Sequence record: NC_061450.1
Direction: 5' to 3' (one strand)
Length of the DNA: 64,000 nucleotides
Below the pieces are notes generated by a model. That model did no database searches. It saw nothing but the letters and a program-made list of their open reading frames with translations, and had not been told where the DNA came from. Position 1 is the stretch's first letter, and the number at the start of each line of letters is the position of its first letter. Below, one piece after another: positions 34,658 through 61,495 of the stretch. The translations under genes and the position numbers were made by a program.

Positions 34658-34690
34658 TTGCGATTATTCTTAATGTTGGATGATGGTCGA

Positions 34691-34699
34691 TATTTACAG
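34691..34699 (-). promoter_or_regulatory. Putative phage promoter motif CTGTAAATA
   Basis: Directly after a terminator, 34 nt upstream of SbcD. Confidence 0.65.
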
Positions 34700-49714: not shown

Positions 49715-49743
49715 TTTGAAAATACCTTTCGTGTGTTTAGTCT

Positions 49744-49752
49744 TATTTACAG
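49744..49752 (-). promoter_or_regulatory. Putative phage promoter motif CTGTAAATA
   Basis: After a terminator, 30 nt upstream of the clamp loader. Confidence 0.65.
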
Positions 49753-55172: not shown

Positions 55173-55466
55173 CTATTGAGGATCGTCAGGAAGATTTAGA
55201 ATAGCATCCAGATCAAGACCGTGTAGACCATGGCCTTCAGGAAACGGATCATGTTTGACATACTGAAAATTGGGACTGTAGTAGGCAAAGCTGTTGCGTG
55301 CTACGTTCTGCGTCTCGCGCTTACCTGCTGCCTGCTTGTTAGCCACGTGGCGATCAATGCGTGCCTTGCGCGGGTCAGGCTTTTTGTCCAGGTCGTCAAA
55401 AATACCAACGACACGACAACGACGGTAGTTCGGATGAACGCTGATATGTTTGACGGTTGCTGTCAT
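55173..55466 (-). CDS. Hypothetical protein
   Basis: 97 aa, ATGA-coupled to the TnpB-lobe gene. Confidence 0.6.
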   Translation of the reverse strand: MTATVKHISVHPNYRRCRVVGIFDDLDKKPDPRKARIDRHVANKQAAGKRETQNVARNSFAYYSPNFQYVKHDPFPEGHGLHGLDLDAILNLPDDPQ

Positions 55467-56497
55467 TTATACTTCCCCTTAACGGAGTAGATAAGACCTT
55501 CTTTACGCATGACAATAAGGTATTTGGCCTTGCGGTCAGAATTGATCTCACCACGAATCACATTGCTGATGTGGATTTTCTTTGCGTCACCAACACTGAG
55601 CGCTGTATTGGATTCAACAAAGCTAAAGCCAGAATCAGAGACAGATAAGGTATTGTTTTTTGCATCCGGGTTTAGTTTATCCGGACGACTACCTTGCTTG
55701 TTGGTATTGTCGGACCAACGTTGCCAATGGGCTGCACAAGAAGTCAAAGCACGACTAACAAGGCTGCGAGGGATTTTCAGGCCATGCTTTAAGTAAGCTG
55801 ATCGCAGCTCCGTGATATAGGTGCTGGTCGGCAATGGAGCTTCTTTGCTTTTCTGCTTAGGGAATCGATTGATTGTATATGCCCACCAATGATTGTAAGC
55901 ATCAACCTTGATAGCAATATACTTCTCAAGGATTGCAGCCTGTTCCAAAGTACACTCGATTTCAAATTCAAATGCTTTTGGATCGTCTTTGTCGCGGAGC
56001 TTGATTTCATTCTGCTCTGCAAGCCAGACCTTCTTGTTCATAAATCGAACGCAGTTAATCCAAGAGTACAGGAAAGAAACCTTGGACGAGTCTTTTGGAG
56101 GAACATCACCAAACAACTCCACCAGCAACGGAATGGCAAAACCAAAATCAATCTTTTGCTGAATGAACAACAGTTTGATGTCGGCATCGGTAAGATTGGT
56201 TCCAGCACGATAGGAATCAAAGAACTTTTTAGTTCTGCCATAACTAGCCAACAAGTCAGCAGGCATTACGTCCAATTCCTTGGAGGTATATTCCTTATCA
56301 ATCAAGATCGACAAAGCCTGAGCGATTGAAATCTCAGGCCAGGTACGATAGTCTTCTAATGGAAATTTTCTGCGATGATGCTCATACAGATAAAGGAAAT
56401 CCCCGATGCGGGAATAACGCGACTCAATATCTGCGAGGTTGTCGCTCTGGCTTGACACCCGGTCTGCGGTTTTCGCGGGGCGCTCTGTCTTCGCCAT
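55463..56497 (-). CDS. Protein with unknown N-terminal domain fused to a TnpB/IS605-OrfB-like REC-WED lobe, no RuvC
   Basis: aa 174-344: KAFEFEIECTLEQAAILEK...AYN (HTH_OrfB_IS605-like), YITELRS, KIPRSLVSRALTSCAAHWQRW, GSRPDKL, then WED-like strands; stop before any RuvC Asp. Confidence 0.55.
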   Translation of the reverse strand: MAKTERPAKTADRVSSQSDNLADIESRYSRIGDFLYLYEHHRRKFPLEDYRTWPEISIAQALSILIDKEYTSKELDVMPADLLASYGRTKKFFDSYRAGTNLTDADIKLLFIQQKIDFGFAIPLLVELFGDVPPKDSSKVSFLYSWINCVRFMNKKVWLAEQNEIKLRDKDDPKAFEFEIECTLEQAAILEKYIAIKVDAYNHWWAYTINRFPKQKSKEAPLPTSTYITELRSAYLKHGLKIPRSLVSRALTSCAAHWQRWSDNTNKQGSRPDKLNPDAKNNTLSVSDSGFSFVESNTALSVGDAKKIHISNVIRGEINSDRKAKYLIVMRKEGLIYSVKGKYK

Positions 56498-56505
56498 AGG
56501 TCCTC

Positions 56506-58179
56506 TCAGTGTTTTTCGGTGTAGTATTTGATATACGCACTATTTACAGTTTCTTGCTGATCACGAGAAACCTTCTTACTTGTGATACAACGTCGGTCAC
56601 TGCTAAACGTATGGCCATTCTCCCACACCTTCTTGAAAAGAAGCACCGAATCGGTATCGTCGTAGAAAGGCTTTACATCCATTGGGATGACGTTGTTGTA
56701 CTCACCTAGTATGGAGGCACCATCAAATTCAGCGCTGCACCAAAGGTTGGTAGCAATCACAGAAAGCAGTTGACGAGATTCGGTCCCCTGAAGAAAATGA
56801 CTCAACACAGAGTAACGTTCCCGTTTGAACTTGGAGACGCCAACACGCTGCACACAGCCCATGTCATTTTTAAAATGATACACACCATCAGGGCAACGAG
56901 TTTTTGAGGCAATGGTTGTCAGCAAAGTTTCAATCGATTTACTGATCTCCTTGTGCAGACTTTTCCAGTTGCGCCAAATGTCCATCACAAACTTTCTATG
57001 CAACTGCTTAGTTTCGTTGTTGTCCACTCCTTCAATTTTCTTCAACTTGGCACGTACCTTGCTGTCGCGCCAAAGACTTTCAAACAGAGGTGTTCTGTAA
57101 GGAATCAAAGATTGCTTGTCGTGGTCGAATACGATAATGATAGGAACGTTGTTCCAGCCTTTGAAAATCCCACCAAAGTTAAGTTGCTTGGCAGTCTCGC
57201 GAGTTATGCCTAAGATTTTGGCAAGCTCCGTGTGACTAAGCTGGATTTTCTCAGGAAAAGGTACTTCGTATTTGATGAACAACTCTTTGAGGATTGTAAC
57301 CTGAGCCTGAGGCATGTCGTAGTTTGAGGCGTAGTCGTGATCAAAGCACAGGTGTTTTACCACACGGAGCAAGGCCTGACTATTGCCAAACATCCTGCTG
57401 CCCACTTCGTTTATCCTGTAGCTATCGTAAAACTCAACTATCCTATCACCAGGAACTCCGCCCACTACCTTCATTTTAAGATTGCAGATCTGCTCCAGCA
57501 CAACCCACAGTCTCTGATAGCTGCTCTTTTTACCTTTCGCCGATAAATTTCTCAGGCAGTCCATCATACGGTCCAAATAAAAGCGATAGGGCCTTTGATT
57601 CTCCCACGCCTGCTTGATTAGTTGCTCAAGCTCCTTGTTGCCCCGACGCATGTGTTTAGCATCAGGACGACGGAATTTTGGCTTTTTGATCTCCGCCACA
57701 ATACTTTTTTCGACAATTCCTGCAATAGACGGAGCTTTCGCCTTGCGTCGCCTGCGGACCGTAATGTCATACAGGGGCTCATCTATGATAAAGGCCTTGC
57801 GAAATGCCCGTAGGAAGCTTGGCTTGAACTGCCATTCGCGGCTAAGACCTAAAATTTTGCTGTGTTTTGTGACAATTAAGGTTTTCTCCAACCACTCCTG
57901 AACAGCAACCGATTTATGGTAGTGCATGGCATATCTGGCGGGATTCCCCCTTTGATTGAACCACGACCACGCCATAGGGATTTGACCCTTGTCGCTGCGG
58001 CTGGTTAACCCTGTGCGTTCTGCAAGGTGCAGGAATAAGAAACCAAGACTCTCTCTAAACTTTGTTGCATCGGCCCCTTGAGGTACTGGGCACTTATCTA
58101 TGGTCTGATCCCAAAACAGCCTGTGGACAGACAGAGGAACAAGACGCGTTCCACGGTAAGTGATTTTCTTCATCAACAC
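56506..58179 (-). CDS. Compact family-A-like polymerase (TV-Pol-like), no exonuclease, possible N-terminal wHTH
   Basis: GSRMFGNSQAL (motif 2), NYDMPQAQVTIL (motif A, D288), RETAKQLNFGGIF (motif B, R327/K331), FLQGTES, SAEFDGA (motif C, D486); 557 aa. Confidence 0.7.
   Translation of the reverse strand: MLMKKITYRGTRLVPLSVHRLFWDQTIDKCPVPQGADATKFRESLGFLFLHLAERTGLTSRSDKGQIPMAWSWFNQRGNPARYAMHYHKSVAVQEWLEKTLIVTKHSKILGLSREWQFKPSFLRAFRKAFIIDEPLYDITVRRRRKAKAPSIAGIVEKSIVAEIKKPKFRRPDAKHMRRGNKELEQLIKQAWENQRPYRFYLDRMMDCLRNLSAKGKKSSYQRLWVVLEQICNLKMKVVGGVPGDRIVEFYDSYRINEVGSRMFGNSQALLRVVKHLCFDHDYASNYDMPQAQVTILKELFIKYEVPFPEKIQLSHTELAKILGITRETAKQLNFGGIFKGWNNVPIIIVFDHDKQSLIPYRTPLFESLWRDSKVRAKLKKIEGVDNNETKQLHRKFVMDIWRNWKSLHKEISKSIETLLTTIASKTRCPDGVYHFKNDMGCVQRVGVSKFKRERYSVLSHFLQGTESRQLLSVIATNLWCSAEFDGASILGEYNNVIPMDVKPFYDDTDSVLLFKKVWENGHTFSSDRRCITSKKVSRDQQETVNSAYIKYYTEKH
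56541..56549 (-). promoter_or_regulatory. Putative phage promoter motif CTGTAAATA
   Basis: 44 nt upstream of the start at 56497 (inside the 3' end of the upstream CDS). Confidence 0.5.
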
Positions 58180-58203
58180 TCGCTTTTGTACTTCGATGCC
58201 AGT

Positions 58204-58212
58204 TATTTACAA
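58204..58212 (-). promoter_or_regulatory. Promoter motif variant TTGTAAATA
   Basis: 25 nt upstream of the polymerase-like gene. Confidence 0.5.
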
Positions 58213-58665
58213 ATTCCTTTGCGTTCGCTGGCTTTTCTTCGGAGCATGGACATGAAAGGCTTATAAAATCTCTGGGTACGTCTATAAAACAAGAATATCC
58301 TCTATACCAACATGGGATCAGAGGCAGATAACACGATGAATGAGACAGTTAGGGTCTCATGATTTTAGCGATATTTTTCGGCTAGATCTGGTCTATGGCA
58401 CACCGTAGGCAGGTCACTAGGCGCGGTATGGACGCCATAGGTCGATCCCGTCAATAGCACCCAAAAACCGTACATTAGAGGGCTATTTCGAACAGTGAGC
58501 TTCATAGGTCGCCCAGGAGCGAAATCTGTGGAGGTCGAAAAGTGCCGTCCTCAAGGAATTACGCCCAGGGCATCCGTAGACACCCTATAGGCGCTTCCTC
58601 TGCTGGTCAAAAATTTCTAATCCAAGATTTTCAGACGAATCTCAGAGATTTTTACCCGCCATAGA
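58213..58665. other. Long non-coding region with long-range inverted repeats (origin or ncRNA candidate)
   Basis: AAAATCTCTG (58265-58274) / CAGAGATTTT (58643-58652); GTCTATGGC (58391-58399) / GCCATAGAC (58658-58666); ATGAGAC hairpin at 58340-58360. Confidence 0.4.
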
Positions 58666-59367
58666 CTATTTTTTACGGCTGACCACTTTGTTTAGCTTAA
58701 CGCCGATGGACGTTAGAATGCGCTGAACCGTCTGGCCATCATGATTTTTAATTGCCTGAGCCAGTTCATCACCCTGCTCACGGCTTAATTCAGGCATGAT
58801 CAGCTTCAACATCTGGCTGCGTGCTTTAGCGCTAGGGCTTTTTCCACGCGATTCGCTGGCCATAATCGTTGTAGCAGGCACGCCTTCACGCTCCTGATCT
58901 TCCAAAGGAGCGGCTTCAACGCCTGGAGGACGTTTGACAATGCGCTGCGGACCCTCGCCACGCAGGATAGCAGCCAGACGTTCGCCCAGAGGTGCAAACA
59001 GGCGCTCAAACTCTGACTTTGGCTGCCACGTATCGCTGTTGCTGTAGGTGAACACCTCTGTATCGCGCAGATTCTCACCCTTGTTGCCCAGATTCGCTGC
59101 CTTGCGTGCCAGATCCCGGCCCACTTCCTGCTCATCGTCCTTGAGGCGACCACCTTCAACAGCTTTAGGCCCGGGCGCAGCACGGAAATCAGTGTTGTCC
59201 ACGCCTACCCGCTTATCGGTCAAACGAGATTGATCCCCAATGGCCGTAGGCTTAACATCGCGTACGGGATCTGGATTGTTGGTAGAATCATTGATTGACT
59301 GATTAGGCGTTACATTAGGTGGCTGAGTCACGGAGTTCTCGCGGCTCAGGCTTAAACGTAGTTTCAT
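58666..59367 (-). CDS. Putative virion protein (SLSR motif)
   Basis: Likely start MKLRLSLSRENS (GAGG RBS); 233 aa. Confidence 0.55.
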   Translation of the reverse strand: MKLRLSLSRENSVTQPPNVTPNQSINDSTNNPDPVRDVKPTAIGDQSRLTDKRVGVDNTDFRAAPGPKAVEGGRLKDDEQEVGRDLARKAANLGNKGENLRDTEVFTYSNSDTWQPKSEFERLFAPLGERLAAILRGEGPQRIVKRPPGVEAAPLEDQEREGVPATTIMASESRGKSPSAKARSQMLKLIMPELSREQGDELAQAIKNHDGQTVQRILTSIGVKLNKVVSRKK

Positions 59368-59378
59368 TTCGTTTCCTC

Positions 59379-60479
59379 TTAGCGGACTACAAAGCCCTTG
59401 TTGATGTTGTATTGAATTTCTTTGCGTTGAACAGGACGTGTGGTAGCAACCCATTCCCATGCCTGCTGACGTGAGTTGCGTTTCTTGGGCGCCTCCATAA
59501 CCTTGAGCACATAGTTCCTGTCCGGCAGAACAATAAGGTCCTCAGGCTCAATCATACCAACAGAAGCCGGCAGGACAACCGTGATGTTGCCGATGGTCAG
59601 CTCCTGATCGTAGTTCAACACGTTGGCTTCTTCACTGATATTACACTTAACAGGCGTAACACCCTGATCAAAAATCATAACGCAGTGTGTGAACGTTTCG
59701 ACATTGCGAACGCGAATGATAATATTCTGTCCACGATGCTGATCAAGCAAGGCCATTGTGAGTTCCGTAGGCTGTTTATTGATAACTGCCATTGGTCGGT
59801 ACTCTGCACCATACAGCTTATCGTTTTCCCTGATGCTGTATTTAACTGTTTTGAAATACTTGGGCACGGTAACGTCAAAGTCCACATAGCCGTCCTTGCG
59901 TACCTGCCTGAACAGCAATGGAGCAACTGATGGGTCAAGGCTGTAGCCTGTGTAACTGTCCACGTGATGGTGAGTCATTACAACGTATTGATAGCCTACT
60001 GCTGCAAACCCTGGCTGCACACCCTGACGGTAGCAGATGCCACAGTTGACCACGTTGCCTCCATCCCAGCGTGTATCAAAGTCACCACCGTCTGTTGCGA
60101 GATCTACTGCATCAATCATGGCACGCTCTGCGCCATTGATCTCATCCAGAGAAATGGCATTCGGACGGCCACCACCAAACATGGTACGGTTGGCAGGAAC
60201 GATTTCAACATTGCGCTGGTGGATATCAGACTCACGTCCAACAGACTTCAATCCGCCTTTTGTTTCGCCTGGCAGATTATCAACACGGTTGCAGCTACAC
60301 ACAAGACCAAACTTGGCCTTCTTGAAGATAATGCAACGTGTGGCATCCACGGCAAGCGCCTGTTCAACTTTGGACTGTACTGCAGGAATGATGCTGTCCA
60401 TCCTTTGTTGGACGCGGTCTCCTTCAAACGTTTTGTAGCGGGTAAACGGAACATTTTTACCGCGTTTAATCCAGCTCAT
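59379..60479 (-). CDS. Putative neck/head-closure structural protein
   Basis: 366 aa; CSC and CGICY zinc-type cysteines, beta-rich C-terminus; late-type motif upstream; function inferred only. Confidence 0.45.
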   Translation of the reverse strand: MSWIKRGKNVPFTRYKTFEGDRVQQRMDSIIPAVQSKVEQALAVDATRCIIFKKAKFGLVCSCNRVDNLPGETKGGLKSVGRESDIHQRNVEIVPANRTMFGGGRPNAISLDEINGAERAMIDAVDLATDGGDFDTRWDGGNVVNCGICYRQGVQPGFAAVGYQYVVMTHHHVDSYTGYSLDPSVAPLLFRQVRKDGYVDFDVTVPKYFKTVKYSIRENDKLYGAEYRPMAVINKQPTELTMALLDQHRGQNIIIRVRNVETFTHCVMIFDQGVTPVKCNISEEANVLNYDQELTIGNITVVLPASVGMIEPEDLIVLPDRNYVLKVMEAPKKRNSRQQAWEWVATTRPVQRKEIQYNINKGFVVR

Positions 60480-60499
60480 ATAGTTCTCCTCTAGTCATG

Positions 60500-60508
60500 A
60501 AAATTAGT
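60500..60508 (-). promoter_or_regulatory. Putative late-type promoter motif ACTAATTTT in the divergent promoter region
   Basis: 21 nt upstream of the start at 60479; the strand switch occurs here. Confidence 0.5.
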
Positions 60509-61444: not shown

Positions 61445-61453
61445 CTGTAAATA
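61445..61453 (+). promoter_or_regulatory. Putative phage promoter motif CTGTAAATA (plus strand)
   Basis: 43 nt upstream of the plus-strand gene at 61496; CTGTAAATC variant at 61474-61482. Confidence 0.65.
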
Positions 61454-61495
61454 AACCTCAGGTTAAAGTATATCTGTAAATCAGAGGATTTGTTT

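Follow-up and report, generated by a model that had tools for sequence, protein, structure and literature searches.

A long non-coding gap in the Erwinia jumbo phage pEa_SNUABM_5 appears to be exchanged as one block with a polymerase and its TnpB-lobe partner

The Erwinia amylovora jumbo phage pEa_SNUABM_5 (MW366843) carries a gene-free gap of 492 nt that appears, from comparison with its relatives, to be kept by selection and exchanged as a block with the two genes that follow it. These genes encode a minimal polymerase (gp225) and a partner protein that resembles one lobe of TnpB (gp224). The window analysed here is a stretch of 64,000 nt whose first base is base 124001 of the record. Within it the gap occupies positions 58174-58665, in a neighbourhood whose genes all lie on the minus strand; the stop codon of gp226 (58666) bounds it on one side and the ATG annotated for gp225 (58173) on the other. 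Because the gap is real, selected and exchanged together with the polymerase and the partner, we consider that it is most readily understood as a DNA site for the proteins of its own cassette. Our preferred reading, which we hold tentatively and place somewhat below an even chance, is that the gap combines a cassette-specific DNA site, possibly one for priming or initiation, with the promoter of the polymerase gene.

The gap is non-coding. No open reading frame (ORF) is shared across the relatives described below, in which the open frames differ; six-frame peptides of the gap match solely between near-identical pairs, and do so in shifting frames; and codon periodicity is absent, with identity by codon phase flat at 0.59/0.67/0.59. 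On these results we rejected a hidden gene, and a tRNA scan found no tRNA. An earlier note on this DNA had called the region the largest ORF-free gap in the window, and this proved correct. In the whole 267-kb genome it ranks, by a crude gene call, first or second in size, and only 22 gaps there reach at least 250 nt. The extent proposed at that time (58213-58666) began at 58213 and thereby missed a promoter-like box as well as the 5' leader of the polymerase gene.

To follow the gap across relatives, we used a comparison set of 15 annotated relatives and 16 metagenomic loci, the relatives including Yoloswagvirus, Alexandravirus, Snuvirus, Salmondvirus, Sasquatchvirus, a Yersinia phage and unclassified phages. 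A gap of 329-667 nt separates the homologues of gp226 and gp225 in all 29 loci where it can be measured, which represent at least eight lineages (in this count the polymerase gene of phage JA13 is only partly annotated, and locus L019 repeats the arrangement of L018). Thus none of the measurable loci keeps both genes and lacks the region, a loss that the earlier note had named as telling against its proposal. The closest usefully diverged relative is a 259.6-kb metagenomic phage contig (L032), which has a polymerase of 74% identity and a gap of the same length, 492 nt. The two gaps differ by two offsetting 1-nt insertions or deletions and are 65% identical overall and 58% identical in the central 355 columns. 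Because fourfold-degenerate sites of gp227, gp225 and gp224 are just 39-47% identical in the same comparison, the gap is, on the evidence of the alignment, kept by selection. Conservation against L032 is blocky, with conserved gap positions at 21-60, 141-160, 221-240, 281-380 and 420-492. Furthermore, about 360 nt can be aligned between the gaps of what we define below as type-B cassettes, even though their polymerases are just 42-45% identical (nhmmer E 1e-15). A relative of about 99% identity from a silage metagenome shows 7 differences in 1194 positions across the gap and the 5' part of gp225, versus 33 in 1633 across gp226-227. The conservation in relatives on which the earlier note had made its proposal depend is therefore found at the level of sequence, with the gap present everywhere and under purifying selection.

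Near-identical phage backbones carry different versions of the gap, gp225 and gp224, and because of this we regard the three as a single exchangeable cassette of 3.15 kb (55476-58622, minus strand), made up of the gap minus its first ~43 nt together with both genes. The left cassette limit, about 40-45 nt beyond the gp226 stop, can be placed at 58621-58626 from contigs and blastn. In contigs of three independent studies, a match of 97-98% over 58626-60500 gives way to unrelated sequence, and blastn homology to L018, L024 and L026 ends at 58621-58623. On the right, homology resumes at 55466-55475. The contrast is clearest in L023, where gp226 is 99% identical to that of pEa_SNUABM_5 while the polymerase is just 23% identical and the gap is unrelated after its first ~43 nt. 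The earlier suggestion that non-coding region, polymerase and TnpB-lobe protein form a three-part order is borne out by these sharp and recurrent limits, and the comparisons indicate that this order is a real evolutionary unit. No repeats were found at the two cassette limits, which disfavours transposon ends or site-specific cassette sites at these positions; replacement therefore seems to occur by homologous recombination in the conserved flanks.

Two deeply diverged cassette versions occupy the same slot. Type-A cassettes encode a polymerase of 552-581 amino acids (aa) and a partner of ~340 aa, whereas type-B cassettes encode a polymerase of 525-545 aa that is ~22% identical to that of type A and a partner of only 155-175 aa, with no homology between the two kinds of partner detectable by profile comparison. 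The gaps of the two types share only the hairpin box beside gp226 and a TGTAAA box near the polymerase gene. Some loci are irregular. In L027 (5661-6327) a 667-nt mosaic gap joins a ~170-nt 5' segment homologous to type-B gaps to a polymerase-proximal segment of type-A group 1, from which it follows that the halves of the gap can recombine separately; the 5' segment of this mosaic is rich in GCGAAAAA-like repeats (eight copies, P about 0.01). The Dickeya phage JA13 (L012:1688-2930) has an 855-nt coding sequence annotated where its relatives have a polymerase gene of ~1.6 kb, and this gene may be broken or under-annotated. In phage AD1 (L007:3005-3971) the polymerase coding sequence is annotated from an internal start, and the frame is open from L007:3408.

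Although gp225 (56506-58173, minus strand) is annotated as a 'putative helicase', it appears to be a minimal polymerase of the PolA/T7 RNA polymerase (RNAP) superfamily that resembles the TV-Pol group. It has invariant residues D286, K329, E482 and D484 in motif A-, B- and C-like contexts. The top Foldseek matches of its AlphaFold2 (AF2) model, which has a mean predicted local distance difference test (pLDDT) score of 81.6, are without exception T7 RNAP, POLRMT or Pol I; their E-values, between 2.5e-3 and 0.1, are weak. A sequence profile of gp225 gave nothing significant against the PDB (Pol gamma, E 0.8). A TV-Pol or family-A polymerase is expected to combine palm and fingers with an Asp in motif A, R..AK..NFG in motif B and a D in motif C, and the earlier assignment of gp225 as a polymerase is thus upheld by its motif residues and by fold matches of weak E-value. 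At residue 291, which corresponds to the steric-gate Glu of Pol I (motif A DYSQIE), a Gln is nearly invariant in all cassette types; with RNA polymerases as the best fold matches, the substrates of the enzyme may be either NTPs or dNTPs. The partner gp224 (55463-56497, minus strand; AF2 pLDDT 78.5) has a rear half like the WED/REC lobe of TnpB and lacks a RuvC nuclease. Its rear ~180 residues match ISDra2 TnpB structures 8exa and 8ex9 (Foldseek E 1e-4), with a template-modelling (TM) score of 0.71 on a lobe of 166 residues; this best score comes from a TnpB chain lacking a resolved RuvC domain. The fold match of the rear half agrees with the TnpB-lobe call made earlier. A structure-atlas look-up for the type-B partner returned no usable match.

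Replication and recombination genes surround the cassette, and the main divergent switch between strands lies 2 kb from the gap. Just upstream, an ATG at 59460 would extend the open gp226 frame to 264 aa and into the end of gp227, whereas the record start is at 59367 (233 aa); the lengths of the relatives' proteins (229-236 aa) favour the shorter form (window 58666-59460). Full-length TnpB genes exist nearby in some metagenomic relatives. In L018 (3480-4637), and also in L019-L021, a TnpB of 385 aa with HTH_OrfB_IS605, OrfB_IS605 and Cas12f1-like_TNB domains sits between the resolvase and the gp227 homologue of phages whose gp226 is 87% identical; it is absent from pEa_SNUABM_5, and L022 has a cut ORF of 157 aa at the corresponding place. 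Because a full-length TnpB has been inserted near the cassette in these relatives, IS605-type elements appear to be active in this phage group.

When followed from gp226 towards gp225, the gap begins with a backbone-linked box and hairpin just past the gp226 stop (58606-58645, minus strand) that is 90-95% identical to L032. The 5' arm of this hairpin, GATTCGTCTGAAAATC, is common to both cassette types, while the 3' arm differs yet still pairs, and nhmmer and blastn matches across cassette types are confined to this part. In Alexandravirus relatives a T-run follows the equivalent hairpin, giving it a terminator-like appearance. An exact-pattern scan for the hairpin box found two unrelated contigs and Yoloswag. 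In other searches, a protein scan of viral contigs found Yoloswag alone, and a metagenome scan found nothing. A GC-rich hairpin follows (58554-58601, minus strand; gap positions 65-112), and its pairing is kept in L032, with 12 pairs kept through eight changes, three pairs changed on both sides and none broken. Compensatory pairing at this hairpin was considered and set aside, because shuffling the alignments gives results that are just as good (P 0.09 and 0.39).

The part of the gap nearer to the polymerase contains two further elements. The first is a conserved cassette-specific core (58294-58385; gap positions 281-372), which includes three small inverted repeats, among them a 7-bp hairpin at 58340-58360. 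This core is 60-85% identical to L032 in 20-nt bins and 72% identical to L027 over 92 nt, and neither it nor the other central boxes have another copy in the genome. Its folding energy is low whichever strand is folded (z about -3.2), and it shows no covariation; because its sequence is invariant, the fold is uninformative on RNA pairing. The second element is an AT-rich, easily melted segment (58260-58310) that falls within the least stable 0.08% of the 50-bp windows of the genome. The midpoint of the least stable window falls 86-113 nt before the ATG in nine of 12 type-A gaps, and the sequence there is unconserved. The only other comparable gene-free stretch of the genome, which lies outside the window (genome record 81982-82506, ~525 nt by a crude gene call), also holds one of the genome's least stable duplex segments.

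The gap thus has three sections. The first ~43-60 nt belong to the backbone and provide the hairpin after gp226, and the last ~75 nt contain the promoter-like TGTAAATA box and a short leader for the polymerase gene. The central ~360 nt present cassette-specific boxes at fixed spacing, first the palindrome-bearing core and then the meltable AT-rich segment. In the mechanism that we consider most likely, the polymerase and its nucleic-acid-binding partner would recognise this central DNA and then start, or prime, synthesis there, although both the binding by cassette proteins and any initiation of synthesis at the gap are putative. The most likely readers of the centre are the cassette's own proteins, because near-identical backbones carry unrelated centres, each with its own polymerase and partner. 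Regulators encoded by the backbone are unlikely readers, because no second copy of the conserved boxes of the centre exists in the genome. A DNA site is favoured because the conserved sequence lacks structural constraint, its spacing is fixed, the core lies beside a meltable tract, there is precedent for primases of this kind and the gap is located among replication genes.

Our confidence in a DNA site is nevertheless low, because iterons are lacking, the skew is uninformative and an AT-rich tract is ordinary upstream of a promoter. Several specific observations weigh against such a site. There are no iterons in the pEa_SNUABM_5 gap, where direct repeats are at chance and the best 8-mer (allowing one mismatch) occurs three times versus a shuffle mean of 3.2, and an iteron scan of 21 gaps was significant in L027 only. 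A GC-skew check for an origin did not single out the gap; the cumulative minimum lies 8-14 kb away and tracks gene orientation, so that skew follows the polarity of transcription. The phage has a separately annotated putative DNA primase, and because of this a second initiator is not obviously needed. About 27 other loci melt as easily as 58260-58310, and the AT-rich tract has no conserved position in type-B gaps. It is also important to note that an AT-rich tract upstream of a promoter is equally a feature of ordinary promoter architecture, and that the linkage between gap and polymerase could partly come from recombination that resolves in the nearest conserved flanks.

In the strongest alternative, the gap serves expression control only. 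In this case it would contain the gp226 terminator hairpin, at least one promoter (if several, of differing timing classes) with AT-rich DNA upstream, and perhaps an autoregulatory operator or a long leader. T4 gp43 and gp32, for example, regulate their own synthesis. We regard this explanation as only a little less probable than the DNA site. In its favour, the promoter-like box TGTAAATA (58202-58212, minus strand) is located 38 nt before the gp225 ATG, and each of the 26 gaps analysed has its TGTAAA core once and once only, at 35-53 nt from the start of the polymerase gene. Genome-wide, 46 of 114 TGTAAA sequences lie in sense no more than 150 nt upstream of starts, versus 10 expected, with a peak at 40-55 nt. 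Enrichment and position thus mark the box as a putative promoter that is part of a genome-wide upstream motif. A near-copy of a second such motif, (A/G)CTAATTT, is found at about gap positions 186-196 in pEa_SNUABM_5, and an exact copy is found in L032. Group-2 relatives have an invariant TATAGT box ~135 nt upstream, the AT-rich tract is directly upstream of the promoter block, and type-B gaps begin with terminator-like hairpins. However, the usual promoter-bearing intergenic regions of this genome are far shorter, as the small number of gaps of at least 250 nt illustrates, and a length fixed at 492 nt across saturated divergence exceeds what a promoter needs. Moreover, the uniqueness of the central boxes makes backbone-encoded regulators unlikely as their readers, and no sigma-70-like promoter was found in the gap on either strand.

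Some broader observations on the transcription signals of this phage deserve mention. The full form of the first upstream motif is A-A-N-CTGTAAATA, which is found 40-55 nt before starts (for example, at window positions 34689-34699, 49742-49752 and 61445-61455), and the second motif is found 15-45 nt before starts. Both are candidate promoter classes of the phage, judged by their recurrence at these distances. The most enriched intergenic 7-mers are the terminator-like words AAAGGGA/TCCCTTT. In most type-B gaps there is a conserved TTTACA-like box, the reverse complement of the TGTAAA core, which is exact in nine of the 14 analysed. It is located at about gap positions 99-131 (L007:3005-3407, L014:2491-2882 and others), faces a hairpin with T-runs on both sides and could define an antisense RNA of ~100 nt. 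The pEa_SNUABM_5 gap is without this box.

A further alternative, which we consider quite unlikely, is that the central gap is a gene for a non-coding RNA (ncRNA) that works with the cassette proteins. Such an RNA might be a scaffold or guide held by the gp224 lobe, or a template or primer for the polymerase, in the manner of omega-RNA and TnpB or of ncRNA-polymerase defence modules. In TnpB, the lobe similar to gp224 is the half that binds the RNA and the target, and the gap is the sole non-coding DNA of the cassette, because gp224 overlaps gp223 and no non-coding DNA comes after it. Folded as a single sequence, the gap has a z of -2.6 for the gene strand and -2.2 for its complement, small stable hairpins occur in the conserved core, a few pairs survive sequence changes and length is tightly conserved. 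Despite these points, structure scores at the level of alignments do not exceed those of coding controls. For the column-shuffled alignment of pEa_SNUABM_5 and L032, the gap has a z of -2.2 versus -0.95 to -2.8 in coding controls; for seven group-2 gaps the value is -2.1 versus -0.5 and -1.9; and eleven type-B gaps yield no consensus structure. Covariation, a check proposed in the earlier note, thus singles the gap out no more strongly than coding sequence, and shuffles match the apparent compensatory changes (P 0.09-0.39 for changed-but-paired counts). The constraint on the gap appears to act on sequence rather than on structure.

Searches for known RNA classes were likewise negative. The whole window has no match at gathering score in Rfam 15, including the omega-RNA/IS605-orfB, HEARO and retron RNA families, and at E up to 10 the region 58100-58750 has three chance-level matches only (~16 bits, E 2-6.5). 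No promoter or terminator of its own was found for an RNA from the gap, the sole terminator-like match (58119-58132) being outside it. No gap match of at least 14 nt, as might be expected of a guide and its target, exists elsewhere in the phage genome. In type-B cassettes, moreover, a gap of similar length is retained although the partner is unrelated. We rejected a module that couples an ncRNA to a reverse transcriptase, of the retron or defence-associated reverse transcriptase (DRT) type, given that the polymerase belongs to the PolA/T7-RNAP superfamily and that no structured RNA is supported. A more elaborate proposal would merge the two ideas. The central gap, either transcribed or as exposed single-stranded DNA, would be a specific cofactor held by the nuclease-free TnpB-like lobe of gp224, which would position the TV-Pol-like polymerase to start synthesis at a set point. 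Such guide- or scaffold-directed priming, matched to each cassette type, is in our estimation less likely still.

We give even less credence to the view that the gap has no function of its own and is a spacer, a decayed gene remnant or a recombination scar that hitch-hikes with a fast-evolving polymerase gene. It is true that blastn finds no relative of the gap beyond the same phage, that the middle of the gap is scarcely alignable with Yoloswag and that the repeats in the gap are at chance level. However, a gap of at least 329 nt persists in every measurable locus of genomes that are otherwise tightly packed. Identity to L032 is well above that of fourfold-degenerate sites, with exact length kept, and the alignable type-B gaps and the relative scarcity of changes in the silage relative are similarly at odds with neutral drift. 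Protein-like conservation, as might be left by a decayed gene, is seen in no frame.

The form in which the region was originally proposed, namely as an element or an RNA closed by long-range inverted repeats, fares least well. Every repeat named at that time exists: a 10-nt inverted pair (58265-58274/58643-58652), a 9-nt inverted pair (58391-58399/58658-58666), the 7-bp hairpin at 58340-58360 and the direct repeats CATAGGTCG and CGCCCAGG, each present twice. Neither an excess of repeats over chance nor conservation of the long-range pairs could be confirmed. Against null models of 1000 dinucleotide shuffles and all 492-nt windows of the genome, a longest inverted repeat of at least 10 nt occurs in 8% of shuffles and 12% of windows, and the counts of 8- and 9-nt repeats are unexceptional for both inverted (P 0.06-0.16) and direct (P 0.16-0.57) copies. 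The 7-bp hairpin is unchanged in L032 and broken in L027. A motif, CCTAYRG, with four of its 20 window matches inside the gap was not used, because the pattern was chosen after viewing the sequence. Although the minimum-free-energy fold of the single sequence does pair the 10-nt arms, a closed element is hardly credible when its bracketing repeats are at chance level, both long-range pairs vanish in L032 without compensation and their 5' arms fall within the backbone part or next to it, and so beyond the cassette or at its margin. Because the bracketing repeats are at chance level and unconserved, the idea of an ncRNA closed by terminal pairing is without basis.

If the gap is only a promoter region, the finding is an ordinary one. 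However, TV-Pol polymerases occur widely among viruses and mobile elements. What is new is that such a polymerase appears to move as one replaceable block with a TnpB-like partner devoid of nuclease and a non-coding stretch under selection. Erwinia and Dickeya phages that are easy to grow have at least two deeply diverged versions of this block in the same position, which offers a natural system for comparing cognate and non-cognate specificity. This system bears both on whether such polymerases have dedicated start sites and on the role of a nuclease-free TnpB recognition lobe. In addition, two candidate promoter consensus motifs have been gained for this phage group.

Several known systems resemble parts of this arrangement. 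In initiator-plus-origin modules such as lambda O/ori, the rep/ori of Staphylococcus aureus pathogenicity islands (SaPI) and T4 oriE with repEB, the site adjoins the gene of its reader. The pEa_SNUABM_5 cassette is alike in that a cis site would sit beside the gene of its putative reader, the two are exchanged and diverge jointly, and an AT-rich meltable segment lies by conserved boxes. It differs in that there are no iterons, the skew minimum is elsewhere and the neighbour is a polymerase rather than a classical initiator or helicase loader. The second comparison is with TnpB and its omega-RNA or right-end RNA (reRNA) in IS200/IS605 elements. Here the likeness is in the WED/REC fold of gp224, which in TnpB holds the RNA scaffold and reads the target DNA, and in the presence of a non-coding stretch in the unit. 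Unlike those elements, the cassette has no RuvC nuclease, no match to an omega-RNA family and no transposon ends, and its non-coding DNA, instead of following the TnpB-like gene at the 3' end, precedes the gene next to it.

A looser comparison can be made with origin priming by mitochondrial and T7 RNA polymerases, in which the polymerase recognises a specific sequence or a small hairpin and makes a replication primer. These are single-subunit polymerases of the same superfamily and provide the top fold matches of gp225, but this is an analogy only; the E-values of those matches are weak (2.5e-3 and above), and no promoter consensus of that kind is repeated in the genome.

Finally, the cassette can be set beside systems in which a polymerase of this kind is linked to priming. 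TV-Pols are predicted primase-polymerases of mobile elements (PMC2579912), and an A-family polymerase of the staphylococcal cassette chromosome mec (SCCmec), together with an adjacently encoded small DNA-binding partner, is a proven primase known as CcPol-MP (PMC10061031). [quoted passage not shown] They are also alike in having a small to medium, nucleic-acid-binding partner gene directly downstream, in forming an exchangeable unit and in their proposed role in starting DNA synthesis. The differences from CcPol-MP are nevertheless substantial. The partner in our cassettes is either TnpB WED/REC-like (type A) or of another kind (type B) rather than a demonstrated OB-fold SSB, the helicase and site-specific recombinase are absent from a cassette whose limits enclose the gap, gp225 and gp224 only, and the host is a lytic jumbo phage with a separately annotated putative DNA primase. 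Furthermore, the unit described here includes a long selected non-coding arm, a component that is not described for CcPol-MP.

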